Made by a program: the position numbers and the translations under genes
Notes under the pieces: generated by a model
Database searches by the model: none
What the model was told of the DNA's origin: nothing
The model's input: the letters and a program-made list of their open reading frames with translations, nothing else
In this document: piece by piece, positions 864 through 48,435 of the stretch
How the letters are laid out: each line of letters opens with the position of its first letter
How positions within the stretch are numbered: the first letter of the stretch is position 1
NCBI RefSeq assembly: GCF_021869535.1
Contig: NW_026262723.1
Location: 47,678,001-47,742,000 of the forward strand
DNA from: Mytilus californianus
Taxonomy: Eukaryota
Direction: 5' to 3'
DNA: 64,000 nucleotides

Positions 864-1800
864 TGTCAGAACTAATCTTAATCATTATAACGGAAAATTT
901 TCCTTGTCATAAAACGTATCTTTACAATAACAATTAAAGGCCCTGTTGCTGCAACTTAAGTACATTCTTATGTAAGATGACGGAAAATCATCGCGCAAAG
1001 TTAACAAATGAAAACAAAATGATACCAATATCCTTATGTTACGTGTTTCTGTCGTTATCAGGTCAGATCGAAACCAAACCAAACCAAACCAAATAGATAT
1101 AAGAAATGTATGAACACCAAAACATAAGGGAATGCATGTAAACAAGCAAAAAGTCTAATAATCACTGACAACATTGTCTAATAAGTTGGAGCAGCCTGAA
1201 GGGAAAACAAATTCATAAATAGTCCTTATTTGTGCAGAAAAATACTCAGAGTAATGTAATTTTTCGTGTGTTTTTGGTTTCTGACTCATTGACATATATA
1301 CGGCTGATATCTTCTATAATTTTACATTAATAACTGCATGCAGTGCCACTTGTTTTAAATTATAATGTGTCGATTACCGCTGAAATCAATCGTATATCTA
1401 AAAATCCTGTCTATCACTATAGTAAATTCGGACCATACTAAATGTATACATGTCTGTTAATTGTATATGCTTTTGCAAACTATAATTTCTAGTCCACGGA
1501 CATTCCACTTAAAAAGGTACGTAAAAGATGGGAATTTGTATAGAATATATTCTTCTCTTTTGGCAAACGAAAATATTAATAACATGTGAGATAAGATAAA
1601 AAGGGGATAAAAAAAACATATATATCGAAGAGTGACAGACAACATCATGGTTAAAAGGAGAAAAGACAAAAAGAAAAACACAAGTCAAACCTACACACAT
1701 ACCAAGTTGTGCTTATTTTGTGCGTGATTTCCTCTCCTCATATTTGAAGTAGAGCATACAAGTATTAACATATCATTAAATTTATAAAAAAAGTACTTAC

Positions 1801-2166
1801 ATATGATACCATAGGAAGATTGAATGAAGAAGCTATCCTCCCTTCGTGTATACATGTTTCCTGAGGTCCAATATAAACAGAAATATTATATTTCAACAGT
1901 TCCACTGTTTGCCGAATACTTTCCTTTTCACTTCCATAAGTTTCTGCAGATATGAAAACTAGTTTATGATTTGGTAATATGGTCGAGTCTGAATTAATTT
2001 CGTCCAATGCAAAAGTTAAAGCACCTGATATAGATTGGCCAGGGCGTTGGTAGTATTTACCTAATTGTTCCGATCCCGTTAAATATCCTAAACGGATAAC
2101 GTTACTTCCAGAAGTAAATGTCACAAATCCATAACACATCACCACAAAACAAATAAAATTTATCAT
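1801..2166 (-). CDS. Gyc76C: First coding exon (122 codons) of a receptor-type guanylate cyclase, Gyc76C-like: signal peptide plus start of the ANF-receptor ligand-binding domain
   Basis: MINFICFVVMCYGFVTFTSG hydrophobic leader, then LGYLTGS..YQRPGQSISGALTFALDEIN..AETYGSEKESIRQT..YIGPQETCIHEGRIASSFNLPMVSY, which matches my recollection of Gyc76C-type receptors. Phase-0 donor TAT|GTAAGT at 1801/1800; in-frame stops TAA TGA upstream of the ATG. The next exon was not found in 1-1800. Confidence 0.85.
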
Positions 2167-5214: not shown

Positions 5215-5353
5215 AAATAACACATATCTGAGAGGGTGATAGAGCAGATTGTTACCCCTCGAAAAGACATCGTCAACCTTGGTTTCGCCTCAACTGATAA
5301 TGTTTCCTCGGGGTAACAATCTGCTCTATCACCCTCTCAGCTATGTGTTATTT
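5215..5353. mobile_element. Hairpin MITE
   Basis: ~44 bp near-perfect terminal inverted repeats AAATAACACATATCTGAGAGGGTGATAGAGCAGATTGTTACCCC / GGGGTAACAATCTGCTCTATCACCCTCTCAGCTATGTGTTATTT. Confidence 0.8.
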
Positions 5354-15047: not shown

Positions 15048-15689
15048 ATATATTACATACTTGTAACATATATTTTGATACTTTGAATACCATAGACTAT
15101 CATTTTTTCTGATATTGGACGATTTTTGTATGCACCCATATAGCATTAGCTAGGACAAAGAAAGCCTCTAATAAACCTTCTAAAAGTTCCGAATAACGTT
15201 TGAACCCCAAATACACATACAAATACACAGTCACAGACATAAACACAAACTCACAAAATAACATGCCATGTTAGTTTTTCAAACAAGACTACGCTTCGTC
15301 GAAAGAATTTTAAAACCAGACAATTACAAACAGGACAAAATGCTGATAACTGAGTGATAACCAAAAATAAAGCTACATCATGTAATCTCTAAACAAGTGT
15401 AAATTATATTTCAATATGAACATTCACCCAATGAATTATTTACCTTGAAAATAACAATTTAAAAATTTGAAAGTCAGGGATATATAAGTAAATTATTTTC
15501 ATTTACCTGTGTTTAAAGTAATTGCAAATGGCTGATATTTTTGTTCGAGCATATTATTTTTCTTAAATTGTTTAACATTTCATAGCAGTTTAACATGTTA
15601 CTTTTATTATTCTTCCCTTAGTTTATTTATTTTGTATTTACATTGTATCATAGGTCAAATTTATTTGTTCAGTGTATGTTCACTGGTGT

Positions 15690-16098
15690 TGATATGTCCT
15701 TTGATTGAGTTAAGTCATTTCAATTGAAATTTTATAGTGTGACTTTCTATGTTGTGATGTTACACTATTGTTTCAGAAAAAGGGTGAAGGTTTGGTACCA
15801 TTAAAACGTTTAAACCCGCTACAATTGTTTGCACCTGTCCTAAGTCAGGAATCTGATGTTCAGTAGTTGTCGTTTGTTGATGTTGTTCATAAATGTTTTT
15901 CGTTTCTCGTTTTTTATATAGATTAGACCGTTGGTTTTCCCGTTTGGATGGTTTTACACTAGTAATTTTTGGGGCCCTTTATAGCTTGGCTCCGTGTTGA
16001 AGACCGTACTTTGACCTATAATGGTTTACTTTTATAAATTTTGACTTGGACGGAGAGTTGTCTCATTGGCACTCATACCACATCTTCTTATATCTATT
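15690..16098 (+). mobile_element. Family B variant (B')
   Basis: Same architecture as family B with a diverged sequence; ends CATACCACATCTTCTTATATCTA. Confidence 0.8.
15773..15856 (+). ncRNA. Twister-like ribozyme (type P5), core apparently intact
   Basis: P5 TCAGA/TCTGA; P2 ACCC/GGGT; L1 GAAGG; TAA; T1 GC/GT; P4 CCTG/CAGG; L4 TCCTAAGT; T2 CCT/AGG; predicted cut at 15811/15812. Confidence 0.75.
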
Positions 16099-16329
16099 GA
16101 CGAGTACTATAATCACAAGGGACTTAAGACGAAAAGCAAAATTCATCTATGATCCACTTTGCCTGTAGATAAAATGTGTGCTGAAGATAAATTGTGTATG
16201 AAAAACTTTTTCCCCAGATCACGATAAAGAAAAGTATTTCTAAAACATTTTTTGCGGTGATATTGGTTGAATAATAAAACAAAAATAATAACGAAAAATA
16301 TAAAAGCAACAATAAAGGTACTAGTTCGA

Positions 16330-16575
16330 TTGATTGATTGATTGAATTTTGGTGTTTTAACTTTTAAGCACCGCTTTTGGGCTATTTCGTGGCGGCCAGT
16401 TTTATTGGTGGATGAAGCCGGAGTGCCCGGAGAAAAACACCGACCTTCGATATGAAAACTCACAATCCTAGTCAATTAAGATTGGAGTCGAGTGCACCCG
16501 CACGAGCTGGGTTTGAACCCACAACCTCAGTGTTGACTGGCTAGTAATTACAATAGTAACTACCACCGAGGCCCG
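16330..16575 (-). mobile_element. Full-length tRNA-derived SINE with 13 bp TSD (one mismatch)
   Basis: Reverse complement of 5673-5935; (TCAA)n tail; GGTACTAGTTCGA at 16317-16329 versus GGTACTACTTCGA at 16576-16588. Confidence 0.9.
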
Positions 16576-18301
16576 GGTACTACTTCGAAAAAGAAGTACA
16601 TAAAGGTAACCGTACATATATAAAAGATTTGAAAATTTACTTACTGTTATGTTATTATTTGTTTGTATTAGAAAAACAACTTAAAATATTTTCCAACTTT
16701 AAAGCCTTCTTTGTAGAAGTGGTAATAACGGTTTTTACAATGCATTAATTCCAAGTAAAATGGAAAAGAATCAGTTTGTGGTTTTAACCGTTAAATGAAT
16801 GTTTGATATCTTCTCCAAATCACTCAATTGTATAAATGATCAAAGTTATGAAACGAATTATGATAACATGAATCTTAGAGTAACTTTATTGGCAATTTAG
16901 TTATAAAGTGGTTTCTTGCTTTGAATGTTTGTTGCAAATGTGATGTTTTATATTCAGTTCTGGTGTGTTTTATAACCATAAGAATATTAAAAATGTTATA
17001 GTTTTATGTCCACGGTGATCATTGAATTTCCACATTCATTGTTTTAAAGTATTTCATGGAAAACTATTGTAAATATTGCAACTATTTAAAACTATTTAAA
17101 AAAGAATGAATTCAATCCTCCGAGAGAATCAGTGCTTGATTTTATATGAGGTTCAGTTATATTTCATAACTAACCAAAGGCAGTAACCCAAATATGTAAA
17201 AAAAACCAAACAACGTAAGGACAATTAAGCTAATAGCTATTATTTATGCTTCAGGTTTTTTTTATAAGCGACATTTTACTTCAAATCTATATATTACACC
17301 TATATCTATTTGAAATATGTAAGAAGATGACAATCCCTTTCTTCTTGATTAAGTACAAGCGTTAGCTTCACAATTAGCCTCGTGTCTTTGATGAAATTTA
17401 AAATAACAAAAATACCGAACTCCAAGGAAAATTCAAAACGGAAAGTCCTTTATAAAATGGTAAAATCAAAAGCTCAAACACATCAAACAAATGGAAAACA
17501 ACTGTCATATTCCTGACTTGGCACAGGCATTTACTTATGTAGAAAATGGTGGATCAAACCTAGTTTTTAAAGTTAGCTAAATACTCACTTGTATGACAGT
17601 CGCATAGAATTCTATTATATTGACAACAATGTGTGAGCAAAACAAACAGACATAATAGGTAAAAATGTCAAAAATTGGGGTTCAGCAGTCAACATTGTAA
17701 TATAATCTTAATCACTATAAAACAAATAACTATTTCAACAAAGAAAAACAAAATGGCATATAGACAAAGTACATAAGCAAAAATGAAAGACAAGAATATA
17801 AAATTGACCATAGCACAATCACACAATGGCGGGATGTATAACTACCGAGCCACGCCAAAAGAATATTACAAAAATGGACTAAACAGTAAAGGTTAAAATT
17901 GTACAAGGACAAATAAAAGAAACACTATAACACGTAATTAAAATGATAAACAACGTCTGTATCTCGAATCTATACTTCAAGACCATCATGTATTATTTGT
18001 GAAGTTGATACGGAATATTTATCAACAATGTCTTGGTATCTTCCAATGAACTTTTTTTTAGAAAAAAGGACGACACGTTCTTTGACATAACCTTGGCTTA
18101 CAACTTTCTGCTCTGACACTGGTGACGTTTTATAAGGTCTGAATAGCAGCTGCAAGCTCTTGAATACCGAATAAATTGGGGAATGTATAGCCCATATGCA
18201 GGTGAAGTTGGTATGTTGCTGCTAGTTGGGGAAATTTATAATTTCAAAATCAAAATCGTCTCGTTTGTCGTAGATTCTGGTACTGAGATTCCCGCTTATG
18301 T

Positions 18302-18600
18302 CAATAAACTCATCATAGATACCAGGATTGAAATTTTATATTTACGCCAGACGCGCGTTTCGTCTACAAAAAACTCATCAGTGACGCTCGAATCAAAAAA
18401 TATTAAAAAGGCCAAATAAAGTACGAAGTTGAAGAGCATTGAGGACCAAAAATTCCTAAAAGTTTTGCCAAATACAGCTAAGGTAATTTATTCCTGAGGT
18501 AGAAAAGCCTTAGTATTTCAAAGTTTTTTTAACAGTTAATTTATATTATGAACATATCAATGATAACTCAAGTCAACACAGAAGTGCTGACTACTGGGCT
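18302..18600 (-). mobile_element. Non-LTR retrozyme-like repeat carrying a hammerhead ribozyme
   Basis: Same family as 18875-19365, 34225-34700 and 35565-35852. Confidence 0.85.
18343..18390 (-). ncRNA. Minimal type I hammerhead ribozyme, intact core
   Basis: CGTCA-CTGATGA-GTT-TTTTGTA-GAC-GAAA-C-GCGC-GTC|TGGCG; stem I CGTCA/TGGCG; palindromic stem III; cut at 18350/18349. Confidence 0.88.
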
Positions 18601-18874
18601 CAAATTCGAGGTTTAAGTTTAAAATTGAGGCAGAGGAAACCGTGTATGTTGTTTCTTAAATTACTAGTTCTGGAGGATATATTAATGGAACCCATTCAGA
18701 AAAATTTGGATTGTTAACGGAAAGAACATCATCAGTATATCTGGCTTTTTTTATCGTCTTGTTTTTGACAAGTATCTGAAGGAACCCCGACTCATATGAA
18801 AATAAGAAGAGGTCCTCATATGAAAATAAGAATAGGTCGGCAAGGAGAGGCGCACACTTCGTTCCCATAGGAAT

Positions 18875-19365
18875 GATGAGTTTTTTTTTACAACCACTGC
18901 GTCGATGCCACTGCTTGTAGAGGTTTCCTCTCCGAAGGTATCACCAGCCCAGTAGTCAGCACTTTTGTTTTGATATGAATTATCATTGGTATTGTCATAT
19001 TTATAAATTAACTGTTCACAAAATTTGAATTGTACGGAAAACGCATGATTTTCTACCTTAGGAATAGATTATCTTAGCTGTATTTAACAAAACCTTTCGG
19101 AATTTTTGGTCCTAAATGCTCTTTAACTTCGTACTTTAATTGGCCTTTTAATTTTTTTGATTCGAGCGTTACTTATGAGTCTCTTGTAGACGAAACGCGC
19201 GTCTAGACTTGTATCTTTGATGAGTTTCTTTTACAATCACTGAGTCGATGCCTCTGCTGGTGGAAGTTTCCACCTGGAGTGTATCACCAGGTAATTTTTC
19301 AGCACTTCTGTTTATCATTTATCATTAATATTGTCATATTTGTAAATTAACGAACACAAATTCAC
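18875..19365 (+). mobile_element. Retrozyme-like repeat, about 1.4 head-to-tail monomers (344 nt period)
   Basis: GATGAGTTT recurs at 18875 and 19219; hammerhead at ~19165-19206 with CTTATGA (core G mutated). Confidence 0.85.
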
Positions 19366-22174: not shown

Positions 22175-22560
22175 ATATAAATAAGAAGATGTGGTATGAG
22201 GGCCAATGAGACAACTCTACATCAAAGTCACAATGTATAAAAAGTAAACAATTATAGGTCGAAGTACGGCCTTCAACACGGAGCCTTGGCTCACACCGAA
22301 CAGCAAGCTATAAAGAACCACAAAATTACTAATGTAAAAAAAATCAAACAGGAAAACCAACGGTCTAATCTATATAAAAAAACGAGAAACGAGAAACATT
22401 TATGAACCACACCAACAAACGACAACCACTGAACAACAGGACTTTGGACAGGTGCATAAAAATGCAGCGGGTTAAAACGTTTTACCAGCCGCCAACCTTC
22501 ACCCTAACCTGAGACAGTAGTGTAACATTACAACATACAAAGACACACTAAAAATGATCA
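22175..22560 (-). mobile_element. Family B' repeat, twister motif degenerate
   Basis: Minus strand GGGTGAAGG...AAAACGTTTTAACCCGCTGCATTTTTATGCACCTGTCCAAAGT. Confidence 0.8.
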
Positions 22561-35564: not shown

Positions 35565-35852
35565 GTAAATAAACTCATCATAGATACCAAGATTAAAATT
35601 TTGTACGCCAGACGCGCGTTTCGTCTGCAAAAGACTCATCAGCGACGCTCGAATCAATAAAGCTAAAAAGGTCAAATATAGTACGAAGTTGAAGTAAATT
35701 CCGAAAGGTTTTGTGAAATACAGCTACGGTTATCTATTCCATTGGGTAGAAAATCCTAAGAAATCGAAAAAATCTAAGTTTTATAAACACTTGATTTATA
35801 ATTATGACCATATCGTTGATAATTCATGTCAACACAGAAGTGCTGACTACTA
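35565..35852 (-). mobile_element. Retrozyme-like repeat
   Basis: Collinear with 18302-18600, with nearly the same boundaries. Confidence 0.85.
35604..35652 (-). ncRNA. Minimal type I hammerhead ribozyme, intact core
   Basis: CGTCG-CTGATGA-GTC-TTTTGCA-GAC-GAAA-C-GCGC-GTC|TGGCG; cut at 35611/35610. Confidence 0.88.
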
Positions 35853-43310: not shown

Positions 43311-43730
43311 AAAAATAAGGAGATGAGGTATGATTGCCAATGAGACAACTTCCCACCAAAGTTCAAATAGAGTAGATGTACATGTAAGCAATTAAAGGCA
43401 ACCGTACGGCCTTCAACAGTGAGAAAAACCCATACCGTATAGTCGGTTATAAAAAAAGGCCCCGACATGAAAAATATGAAACAATTCAATTGAGAAAACT
43501 AACGACCTAATTTATAACAAAACAATTAACGAAAAAAATATGACAGACATGAACCAACGACAACCACTGAACTACAGGATCCTGACTTGGGACGGGCACA
43601 TAAAGAATATGGCTGGGTTAAACATGTTTGTGAGCGCTCAACCCTCCCCCTTACCTTGGACAGTGGTGTAACAGCACAAAATAAGAACAAACTATGAAAA
43701 AAGGCTTAACTCATCAGATCGATACAAAGA
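43311..43730 (-). mobile_element. Family B copy
   Basis: Reverse complement of 48050-48435. Confidence 0.85.
43575..43657 (-). ncRNA. Twister-like ribozyme (family B), single mismatches in P2 and P4
   Basis: GGGG-GAGGG-T-TGAGCGCTCA-C-AAACATGTT-TAA-CCCA-GC-CATAT/ATGTG-CCCG-TCCCAAGT-CAGG. Confidence 0.6.
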
Positions 43731-44179: not shown

Positions 44180-45255
44180 AAATAACAAAAATACTGAACT
44201 ACAAGGCAAATTCAAAAAGGGGGAATCTGGGAAAACTGACAAAATCAAACGCTATCAATCAATGGAACAAGTGCAAAACAACTGCCATCTTCCTGACTTG
44301 GCACAGGCATTTTCCGAAGAAAATGGTGGGTTAAACCTGGTTTAATAGCTAGCTAAACCTTCCACTTGTATGACAATTGTCTATAGTTCCGTTATATTGA
44401 CAAAATTGGGTGAGCAACCCAAACAGACATAATAAATTAATGTGACTATAATTGGGATCCAGCAGCCTAGACTGTGTAAACATACACCACAGACATACGA
44501 CACAACGGAATAAAAAAATTCAAACAAACATACAAATAACAAAGAAGACAACAAAAAAAGGTGTTTTAGTAGATAATAAACTTGACAAAGACGCCGACAA
44601 AAATGTTTTTCACGTTTACAGTAAATTGAACAAGACGCCAATAACGTAAGTTTTTGTCGTTGATAGTACATACCGTATAATAGTATAAACTTTCTCGATA
44701 AAGTAGAAATTAGATAAAATATAAATCCAAGGGTACACAAAATAGGAAAACACACTGTAAAAAACTACTTGTGTCCGAATCGTACTTCAGGTCCCACCTG
44801 CACCAGGAACGCCCAAAGTAAAAAATCCGATGACAGGATGCATAAATACTGAGTCACGTCAAAAGTCATACGACCAAGAGAAAAAGAATAGCACGAAGAC
44901 ACATAACGGAAAAACTAAAGTAAAATAGAAAGATACACAACTTTAGCACTTAGAATTTATCACTCAAGACCATGTTGTATTATTTGTGAAGTAGACACTG
45001 AATGTTTATCTATAAGGTCTTGGTACTTTTCGATGAACTTTTTGTTTTGTTTTTTACAAGTGTCTAAAGAAACTCCGACTCATATGGAAATAAGAAAAGC
45101 TCGGCCAGGAGAGGTGCACAGTTGGTTCCCATAGGAATGCCAACAACTTCTGTAAATTACTACCTCCAAATTCAACAAATATGTTGTCAATGATAAACTC
45201 CAGCATACTGATCACTTGTTCTTCGGTGTAGCATGTTTTATTTTCGGACACACCC
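44180..45255 (-). mobile_element. PLE family C: internally deleted RT remnant plus full 3' UTR with a twister-like motif at 44280-44380
   Basis: EQVISMLEFIIDNIFVEFGG..GIPMGTNCAPLLA.LFLFPYESEFL, then KKFIEKYQDLIDKHSVSTSQII; twister P3 CATTTTC-TTCG-GAAAATG. Confidence 0.85.
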
Positions 45256-45848: not shown

Positions 45849-46492
45849 ACACATTTATTATATAACCAGTTGTTGGCATGATACGGGTTATGTTCTTCTC
45901 ATATATTTTATGATGGTATGATACTAAACCCCTAACGGGAGGAGATGTACTTGATTTTCATATGATGAAGACATAATCTTTCAATCAGTTTAATTGAGGT
46001 CTGGAGCTGGCATGTCAGTAACTGCTAGTAGTCCTTTGTTCATTTATGTATCATTGTCATTTTGCTTAGTTTCTTTTGTTACCTATTGTGGCATCGGACT
46101 CGGACTTCTTTTAAACTGAATTTTAACTGTGCGTATTGCTATGTGTTTCTTTATTCTACATTGTCTAGAGGTATAGGTGGAGGGTTGAGATCTCACAAAA
46201 CATGTTTAACCCCGCCGCATTTTTGCGCCTGTCCCAAGTCAGGAGCCCCTGGCATTTGTTAGTCTTATATGTTTTTTAATTTTAGTTTATTTAAATGTTT
46301 TGGAGTTTAGTGTGACGTCCATTTTCACTGAACTAGTACACAATTTTATTTAGGGGCCAGCTAAGGACCACCTCCGGATGCGGGCTTTTCTCGCTGCGTT
46401 GAAGAACCATTGGTGGCCTTCGGCTGTTGTCTGCTCTTTGGTCGGGTTGTTGTCTCTTTGTCATATTCCCCATTTCCGTTCTCAATTTTATT
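45849..46492 (+). mobile_element. 3' UTR / terminal repeat region of the family F PLE
   Basis: Contiguous with the ORF; distal 300 nt match the solo copies at 14903, 28806 and 33241. Confidence 0.8.
46165..46252 (+). ncRNA. Twister-like ribozyme (type P5, family F), all core nucleotides present
   Basis: P5 CTAGAGGT/GCCCCTGG (1 mismatch); P2 CCCC/GGTG (1 mismatch); GAGGG; TAA; GC; P3 CGCA-TTTT-TGCG; P4 CCTG/CAGG; L4 TCCCAAGT; cut at 46207/46208. Confidence 0.75.
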
Positions 46493-47904
46493 AGCAATAG
46501 TGAACATGCAAAATTTATGACAGAGTTAAACATTTTACGTATACGATAAAAAATAACCTAGATACCGATGTTGATGAACCAATTCTGATGTGAAACATGT
46601 ATTTTAATTAGGTTTTAACCATAAATTACAATAATCATATATGTACCATGTAGTGATTAGGCAGAATGATGCACTAAATGACTGCTTTGTTATGAAATCT
46701 ACAAGACAGAAAACGTAGGACTAAATAAGCTCTTACGAAGCAATGTATTGTCTGATTGAATGAATGTATAACAGATTAACGAAGACTTTTTCAGGAAGTT
46801 GTACTGATGGAAGTTTCGTGTTGAACAAGAACAATACAAAATACTATCATGGATTATAATTAATAAACTCAAACGAAATAGATACACAATGTAAAATCAG
46901 GGCACTTTCACAAACACGATGACAGTATTTGTTTGATAATTCCGTACAATGTAAACCTTCAGTTGAAATTAGAAATTGAAATATTATAGACATTAAGGTA
47001 TTAGATATCTTATAGATTGTTTGATCTATGCAATTCATTTTTATAGTCTTATGGGCTTTTTTAAATTGATTTATGCTGTTTCGTTATTTCGACGTTATTT
47101 TCCTGTTCATCCTTTATTGAGACTTTTGGTTGATGTTTTTTGTTAATGGTCAATATATGTTGTCTTTTTTTTTTAAATCTAATTTTCAGCGTTTATCTTA
47201 TTTTTGAATAACAACACTGCTTACTAATGGGTATCGCATATGCCCAGAATTTTGAGTTAAATAAGAAAAGAATGTGAAAACTGAAAAGTGAACAAGGGAG
47301 CCAGCAGGACTCGTTCCGTTGACTGATTAAGGATCTTAAAAATCGTTCTTATACTAATAAGTCGATGATTTACATATGTTTTTTTTAAATCTATACCATG
47401 AAGTCAAACAGATTTAGGAAATTCGTTATTTTACTATAGAACGTGTTTTTCTGTCTATTTAATCTTTCCACCTTTCCATGGATACCTTTTGATTTTTTCT
47501 GACTATATATTTTTTCTTCAACTACTTTTGCTTCTAGGATGTCGCTCTTGTTTTGCAACATGTCGATAAGATATTTGGTATATGATATCGAACAGTAATT
47601 GCGCTTTTGAAACTCATCCTTTTTAAATCAAACTCTATTCCGTATTTGGGTAATCTGGGTTTTTTTGTTGTTATCGCTTCTCCTCAGAATGCGTAATTTT
47701 TTTTTCTCCAAAATGTTCTTTACTTCAATAGGATGATCTGATAAATTTGGACCGAATTGGTACGATCACAAGTATTTCCCTTTTTGTGTTCACATAAGTG
47801 ATATGCTGAAGTAACTCATAAATCATAAGTCATATAGACTATTAGTTATTGGCTTTGAACTAGTTGTCAGTAACTGCGAGTACTCTCAGATCTTAGTCGT
47901 ACTT

Positions 47905-48435
47905 TGACCTATAATTGTTTACTTTTTACACATTGTTACTTGGATGGAGAGCTGTCTCATTGGCACTGATACCACATCTTCTTATTTATATCTAGGGTCT
48001 TTTTGTTGTGGGAATGTATAAGTACCCTGCCACGTCCACTCTGTGTTTTTGTTAGATGTATTTCTACTTTGTATCGATCTAATGAGTTAAGCCCTTTTCA
48101 ACTGATTTTTATAGTTTGTTCTTATGTTGTACTGTTACACCATGGTCCCAGGTTAGGGAGAGGGTTGGCGCGCCTTCAAACAAGTTTAACCCGCCACATT
48201 CTGTATGTGTCTGTCCCAAGTCAGGAGCCTGTAATTCGGTAGTTGTCGTTTGTTGCGTATGAATCGTTTTACATTTGTCATTTCGGGGCCTTTTAAAGCT
48301 GACTATGCGGTATGGGTTTTACTCATTGTTGAAGGCCGTACGGTGACCTATTATAGTTGTTTATTTCTGTGCCATTTGGTCTGTTGTGGAGAGTTGTCTC
48401 ATTGGCATTCATACCACATCTTCTTATTCTTATAT
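47905..48435 (+). mobile_element. Family B: a B' 3' end followed head-to-tail by a full unit
   Basis: CCACATCTTCTTATT ends at ~47988 and ~48430. Confidence 0.85.
48149..48231 (+). ncRNA. Twister-like ribozyme (family B), near intact
   Basis: P5 CAGGT/GCCTG; GGGA-GAGGG; TAA-CCC-GC; P3 CACAT/ATGTG; P4 TCTG/CAGG; L4 TCCCAAGT; cut at 48187/48188. Confidence 0.7.

Follow-up and report, generated by a model that had tools for sequence, protein, structure and literature searches.

Does a segment of an abundant repeat in Mytilus californianus encode a twister ribozyme, and would this particular copy cut itself? This question is raised by positions 15764-15867 (+) of a 64,000-nt stretch of the genome (assembly GCF_021869535.1, contig NW_026262723.1, 47,678,001-47,742,000 of the forward strand), hereafter called the window, in which the initial annotation had seen a twister-like fold. 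We consider it fairly probable that 15764-15867 is a circularly permuted, P5-closed, twister-type RNA located in an abundant short repeat of Penelope-like origin. Given the circular permutation, the ends of the candidate lie in P5. The twister class itself reportedly goes back to Roth et al. in 2014.

Twister core of the candidate

By mapping the letters of 15764-15867 onto the published anatomy of twisters, we found every element of the twister core except P1, and the fold that had been claimed was thus borne out for each core element. All parts described here are on the forward strand. The candidate is closed by a two-part P5, with an outer helix between ACUAUUG (15764-15770) and CAGUAGU (15861-15867), recovered both by RNAduplex and in the MFE fold, and an inner helix between UCAGA (15773-15777) and UCUGA (15852-15856). 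An A-rich junction AAAA (15778-15781), matching the AAA in GUAAA, the published 3' half of L2 (PMC8501958 Table 1), leads to P2, in which GGGU (15782-15785) forms 4 of 4 pairs with ACCC (15814-15817). Directly after P2 come the presumed catalytic guanine and an invariant A (15786-15787), equivalent to G45 and A46 of Osa-1-4, and then the 3' strand AGG (15788-15790) of a loop pseudoknot, which pairs with C15839, C15840 and U15841. Direct reading shows a 23-nt segment between this AGG and the AA of the cut site, in the place of P1. It contains a perfect palindrome, UGGUACCA (15793-15800), where the 5' strand of P1 is expected, and a second palindrome, AAACGUUU (15804-15811), whose last base is U-1 of the predicted cut. 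The U^AA (15811-15813) corresponds to the UAA L1 of published twisters, and the predicted scissile bond between U15811 and A15812 falls within this TAA. Downstream of P2, the GC of L2 (15818-15819) provides one strand of the second pseudoknot, T2, with a C-G and a G.U pair to G15844 and U15845. It is followed by the P3 hairpin UACAA UUGU UUGCA (15820-15833), which has an A.C mismatch at 15821, by P4, CCUG/CAGG around the L4 loop UCCUAAGU (15834-15849), and by an AA junction before the 3' strand of the inner P5 helix. L4 as TCCTAAGT (15838-15845) and L1 as GAAGG (15786-15790), both given in the initial annotation, were confirmed by direct reading of the letters.

In S. mansoni, twister elements follow the order P1, UAA, P2, GC, P3, P4, (G)UCCCAAGC, P4, GUAAA, P2, GAGGG, P1 (PMC8501958 Table 1). 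L4 of the candidate is identical to the published (G)UCCCAAGC except for the compensated U and the terminal U. Four positions of Osa-1-4, namely G13, G30, A46 and G48, are intolerant to substitution (PMC5113685). This set and the guanine after P2 are all present in the candidate, as G15818, G15844, A15787, G15789 and G15786. The full Osa-1-4 sequence behind this mapping is one that we assume to be correct. Its numbering was anchored on checkpoints in PMC5113685. Osa-1-4 tolerates C31U, that is AAGC changed to AAGU (PMC5113685), and the candidate copy carries the equivalent AAGU state. The pairs of the Osa-1-4 loop pseudoknot (CCC/GGG) can also be swapped for other Watson-Crick pairs (PMC5113685), which lends indirect support to the statement in the initial annotation that the GAAGG/UCCUAAG pairing occurs in characterised twisters. 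This CCN/NGG pseudoknot is named T1 in the literature (PMC6154101, PMC5113685), not T2 as in the initial annotation, and we use T1 throughout.

Like members of the twister class such as Osa-1-4, env22 and Schistosoma mansoni Sma-1, the candidate thus has the U^AA, a 4-bp P2, the L2 GC, an optional P3, a P4-closed UCCNAAGY loop, two loop pseudoknots, G-A after P2 and an A-rich junction. Unlike the class, it has no intramolecular P1 and bears two palindromes that separate the pseudoknot strand from the cut site. Unlike most twisters, it is closed by a long two-part P5, is invisible to Rfam and has a predicted activity. P5 occurs in just about 1% of annotated twisters (PMC6154101).

Missing P1 and Rfam searches

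P1 is one of the three stems that define the twister class, and the candidate lacks it: no intramolecular P1 was found in the 23-nt segment, whose monomer MFE is 0.0 kcal/mol, and the same holds in every family. P1 is conserved in the class, yet cleavage in vitro is possible without it (PMC5408937). The twister models of Rfam 15 gave no match over the whole window, either at the gathering score or at E values up to 10. Nor did a Rfam twister match appear on a 151-base slice, on window positions 46100-48300 or in two sets of related loci, including the canonical-core locus L130 described below. The lack of a Rfam match for any copy is likely due to the segment that replaces P1. Since the candidate departs from the class in these two respects, P1 and the Rfam models, we class it as a variant of the twister.

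Thermodynamic z-scores were unremarkable, with -0.6 for 84 nt and -1.2 for 108 nt. We then used a strict descriptor made of a 4-bp P4, a T.{3}AAGY loop, full T1 complementarity, GA, [ACT]AA, at least 3 of 4 P2 pairs and [GA]C. It matched twice in the window, at the candidate copy and at 46228, versus once in 100 dinucleotide shuffles, although such shuffle counts are not probabilities.

Copies, families and compensatory changes

A covariance model built on ten copies detected about 16 copies in the window, and also relatives in metagenome contigs and in contigs mislabelled as "bacterial". Across 25 aligned copies, the expected partners paired in 85.7% of the cells, compared with 28-45% when partners were slid by 1-3 columns. 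Eleven pairs changed on both sides in these 25 copies, a count that reflects few independent events. Between families, compensatory changes maintain both the helices and the loop pseudoknot. First, all five pairs of P3 covary across families. Second, two of the three T1 pairs change on both sides; at pair 18-85 of alignment A4, 15 copies have GC and 2 have AU (the candidate and L130). Third, P2 is also compensated between families, as is P3, and the U-A pair of the candidate P2 stands where copies with CCCC/GGGG have G-C, but P2 is weakly kept overall (62-71% paired). P4 is paired in 93% of cases across the 25 copies, with changes to G.U only. The P5 sequence differs in every family, with a mean of -11.6 kcal/mol for cognate duplexes versus -5.9 for cross-family duplexes, in line with the initial description of TCAGA/TCTGA (15773-15777 with 15852-15856) here and of other complementary pairs elsewhere. 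In B-type copies the outer P5 helix reads ACCACUG/CAGUGGU, a compensatory C-G to U-A change relative to the candidate family.

The pseudoknot states reported in the initial annotation are all present: CCT/AGG in the candidate, CCC/GGG in copies 48146 and 46166, and ACC/GGT in the family at 44283, 39360 and 30592. The covariation drawn from them holds for the loop pseudoknot, where a C-G to U-A change is compensated and recurs in L130. It does not extend to the second pseudoknot, T2, where AU (12 copies), GU (11) and GC (1) amount to one-sided variation save for the canonical G-C of L130, and the independent events are few. Likewise, P2 of the candidate does read ACCC/GGGT, but the CCCC/GGGG with which it had been compared has no perfect copy inside the window. 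There, P2 is CCCC/GGTG (46166), CCCA/GGGG (43572) or CCC/GGG (48146), and perfect CCCC/GGGG occurs only outside, in L126, L129, L130, L133 and L134. At the T1 and P2 positions of the candidate, no majority difference was seen among the differences listed for reads at least 90% alike from three organisms. CCU/AGG and ACCC/GGGU are therefore features of the family and not a private double mutation.

The per-copy table shows that most copies in the window are damaged, and many are without the part upstream of P3 (e.g. 4131 and 12208). Still, the G after P2 is conserved in nearly all well-kept copies, and the AA of the cut site is invariant across copies, with U or C at N-1. Among the 21 copies of the table, 15764-15867 is the only one with T1 3/3, T2 2/2, P2 4/4 and P4 4/4. 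The label of "cleanest twister candidate" is thus deserved as far as the best core in the window is concerned, and less so in that P1 is missing, Rfam gives no match and the A at 15821, a private or minority state, breaks one P3 pair. About 95% of family reads have G there, and with this family-majority form P3 is a 5-bp stem.

Relatives sampled through a linked ORF

In order to sample relatives without bias from the RNA motif, a 127-residue ORF tail piece beside the 46xxx copy was used as query, which returned 40 homologous fragments, and ten contigs were fetched. Six contigs extended 600 nt or more beyond the ORF, and five of them carried the motif 265-362 nt downstream of the ORF and on the same strand. 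One of them, L130, was found through the protein of the element and not through the RNA motif, and its core at 2779-2866 is fully canonical: GGGG G A AGG ... UAA CCCC GC, a P3 of CACAU/AUGUG, and CCUG UCCUAAGC CAGG. It combines the CCU/AGG of the candidate with a canonical AAGC and a perfect CCCC/GGGG P2. As L130 shares CCU/AGG, the compensated pair is also present in an ORF-linked lineage of another sample, through shared descent or a second event. Pfam and protein atlas searches with the ORF tail piece gave no usable name.

We also scanned contigs for the pattern CCTGTNCNAAGTCAGG. In metagenomes, it matched at least 120 loci, nearly all by chance, with three to five true relatives among the matches listed. 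In genome contigs, it matched 6 loci, of which 2 were true relatives, both mollusc DNA in bins labelled bacterial, and in viral contigs there was no match. Two chance matches in human-gut metagenome contigs (L010 and L028) were excluded from later searches. Full copies of these mollusc repeats are found in L124 (FXLX01000049.1, SUP05 bacterium) and L126 (CALHXU010000119.1, Acidimicrobiales MAG), both of which are probably host DNA binned with bacteria.

The host repeat and its probable Penelope-like context

The candidate lies in a short, non-coding, very high-copy repeat at 15500-16097 (+), whose 5' end is approximate and whose 3' end falls at 16091-16097. Over 15500-16097, coverage by reads and contigs from three organisms was enormous, stopping sharply at the 3' end and falling gradually toward the 5' end, and the candidate RNA sits about 250-330 nt from the 3' end. 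Neither an ORF nor a tRNA was found in the repeat. A paralogue at 22580-22175 (-) is 80% identical to it. The tail of the repeat aligns blockwise with the 48xxx and 46xxx tails and shares with them the terminal motif GTTGTCTC...CCACATCTTCTT. Between the candidate family and 46xxx, the twister core is the sole part of the tail with significant similarity (82% over 50 nt). Another very high-copy repeat lies downstream at 16318-16623, with about 220 nt of low-copy sequence between the two.

Remnants of a reverse transcriptase (RT) are located 300-400 nt upstream of sister copies, and RVT_1 exceeded the cut-off in L136, with weak matches in L130 and at window positions 18659-18940. The best explanation is that the repeat stems from Penelope-like elements that encode an RT, either as a non-coding derivative of their 3' untranslated tail or as a 5'-truncated copy of it. 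Naiad Penelope-like elements are dominant in bivalve genomes, have very abundant 3' ends and are without canonical hammerheads (PMC8557442). The clade is marked by an RT that carries a CxC linker and, N-terminally, a GIY-YIG endonuclease, by the absence of a canonical hammerhead and by abundant 3' ends in bivalves. The parent elements most likely belong to the Naiad clade, a label that we infer since the N-terminal endonuclease was not seen. SECIS_1-like matches were found at window positions 45900-45964 (+) with 25.3 bits and at L129:5554-5618 (+) with 28 bits (gathering score 35). In these two related elements, the match follows the end of the RT ORF and precedes the twister-like motif. Selenoprotein-encoding Naiads have been reported in clams (PMC8557442), and the positions of the two SECIS-like matches would fit such elements. 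Our verdict is that the candidate is a P1-less twister variant within a short repeat from a Naiad-type tail. It is most likely of twister descent, and twister-like behaviour is predicted for it.

Proposed cleavage and RNA reads

We propose that, in a sense transcript, the core would fold through P5, P2, P3 and P4 and both loop pseudoknots. The usual twister chemistry, in which G15786 and A15812 would be the key bases, would then cut it between U15811 and A15812, and the products would carry a 2',3'-cyclic phosphate and a 5'-OH. Self-cleavage is plausible at the level of the family and uncertain for the solitary copy 15764-15867. With its one P3 mismatch, this solitary insertion is probably a relic of an active master and not a working unit.

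In raw RNA reads (X21), the repeat was covered equally on both strands, about 300-570-fold, with most reads coming from other copies. No pile-up of RNA ends was seen at 15811/15812, nor was any other start or end point of molecules reported, in a test without a positive control, since the near-threshold hammerhead at 18344-18387 was also without RNA ends. DNA and RNA depth both about double at ~15808 (bins in 15706-15909), close to the predicted cut, and the rise in RNA mirrors the DNA copy number (1.83 vs 1.93).

Palindromes in the place of P1

The site of palindrome 1 holds a perfect palindrome in nearly every family, each time with a different sequence, and at least nine sequences were seen across copies. 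At the site of palindrome 2, other families have AAAC(N0-3)GUUU. Palindrome lengths tend to match within a family, being 8/8 in the candidate and L126 and 10/10 in 46166-46252, 43572-43660 (-) and L130. The homodimer of palindrome 1 has an energy of -11.4 kcal/mol in the candidate copy, and homodimers of the palindrome-bearing segment range from -13 to -20 kcal/mol across copies. Covarying palindromes of equal length without monomer structure point to pairing between two RNAs, as we infer from these comparisons. Two equal-length palindromes would thus replace the canonical P1, and with palindromes in this place efficient cutting may require two paired copies, either as an RNA dimer or within a tandem transcript. 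Minimal hammerheads of other Penelope-like elements have been proposed to pair as two RNAs (PMC7229834), and a dimer requirement would parallel them. We tentatively suggest, as a possibility that we rate on the low side, that Naiad-type elements and their short derivatives carry an obligate-dimer twister, which would cut only in dimers or multimeric transcripts. If true, this would be a second, independent dimer-gated ribozyme in the Penelope-like superfamily, and it would explain transcript processing in a clade described as "without ribozymes".

Alternative explanations

Three other readings of the locus have to be weighed against a twister-type RNA. The first, which we consider a sizeable possibility if short of an even one, is that the family does include an active twister while 15764-15867 itself is dead, a solitary and decayed insertion with an inherited resemblance and without present function. 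The mismatch at 15821, set against the G of the family reads, and the lack of a tandem partner speak for it, as does the state of other copies: most of those in the window are damaged, and the closest paralogue, 22428-22514, is broken, with the 3' strand of P4 deleted and a mismatch in T1. However, P3 is optional in twisters (PMC6154101), mismatches in helices are often tolerated (PMC5113685), and every core position of the candidate is intact.

Second, the motif could be a structured but non-catalytic element of the 3' tail, involved in RT recognition, dimerisation or packaging, in which the fold would be selected and the cutting would not, whether it descends from a twister or converged on one. 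The motif is fixed in a 3' UTR, and such RTs recognise 3' UTRs; a cut about 290 nt before the 3' end would moreover strip the tail needed for priming. The two covarying palindromes suggest that RNA-RNA pairing could be the selected property, and the absence of P1, the silence of Rfam, the loose P2 of many copies and the absence of any sign of cleavage in the RNA reads would all suit a non-catalytic element. On the other hand, the RNA reads were examined without a positive control that worked, the hammerhead at 18344-18387 being silent too. The bases that are kept are the catalytic ones, namely the A that follows the cut site, the G-A behind P2 and the AAG of L4, and a mere scaffold would not need the full active-site set. 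We find this second reading rather unlikely.

Third, chance resemblance or another conserved block, such as the promoter of a tRNA-derived SINE with GGTTTGGTACC as its B box, is very improbable: GGTTTGGTACC, as read from the sequence, does agree with 7 of the 9 positions that the B-box consensus specifies, and Rfam calls no twister, but the chance expectation is about 0.01 per window, no tRNA was found, GGTTTGGTACC is without the C and the A that are invariant in B boxes and has no A box upstream, its segment varies between families as a palindrome and not as a fixed box, and compensatory changes occur in five helices. A tRNA or SINE head was also rejected for the repeat, since no tRNA was found and neither of two papers on mollusc SINEs contained matching text.

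Relation to known elements and neighbouring features

Our preferred reading, a twister variant in a Penelope-like tail, can be compared with two groups of known elements. Like the Perere-3/RTE twister variants of S. mansoni (PMC8501958, PMC7761336), the candidate is tied to a retrotransposon and has many genomic copies; in these variants, P1 varies, as does the count of A residues at the cut site. LINE-type elements carry them at the 5' end, where they trim the upstream transcript, whereas the candidate is located in the 3' tail of a Penelope-like element or its derivatives. It also differs from them in being permuted (P5-closed) and in its palindromes. Like the minimal type I hammerheads of the pseudo-LTRs of canonical Penelope-like elements and of animal retrozymes (Cervera and de la Pena; PMC7229834, PMC8557442), it is a small motif of presumed self-cleaving type near a 3' end or terminal repeat in the same superfamily. 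As in minimal hammerheads and retrozymes, one stem is shortened, action as a dimer or in tandem is thought of, and short non-autonomous derivatives are abundant. Unlike these, the candidate belongs to a different ribozyme class, and the candidate copy was seen neither in tandem nor in circular form.

In bivalves, as in many other invertebrates, Naiads rank among the most abundant retroelements, and they were described without hammerheads (PMC8557442). Our literature search returned no paper naming both "twister" and "Naiad". A conserved twister core in Naiad tails would endow a group regarded as lacking ribozymes with one, and would add tens of thousands of twister-type motifs missed by current covariance models. 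It would also be a naturally occurring case in which to test how a twister functions without P1, possibly as a dimer. The candidate and L130 form a natural compensatory pair in the active-site pseudoknot, and a break-and-rescue experiment would be straightforward.

Other features of the window were recorded as well. Two matches to type I hammerheads, at 35605-35648 (-) with 31.4 bits and at 18344-18387 (-) with 29.8 bits, lie below the gathering score of 34, and both have intact cores (CUGAUGA...GAAA). A long near-perfect hairpin at 5227-5341 (+) matched MIR7504, a plant miRNA precursor, in Rfam with 47.7 bits versus a gathering score of 83, and is more likely an inverted-repeat element than this miRNA. 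Finally, a 133-residue ORF at 1765-2166 (-) looks by eye like an exon of a receptor-type ligand-binding domain and may be an exon of a host gene.
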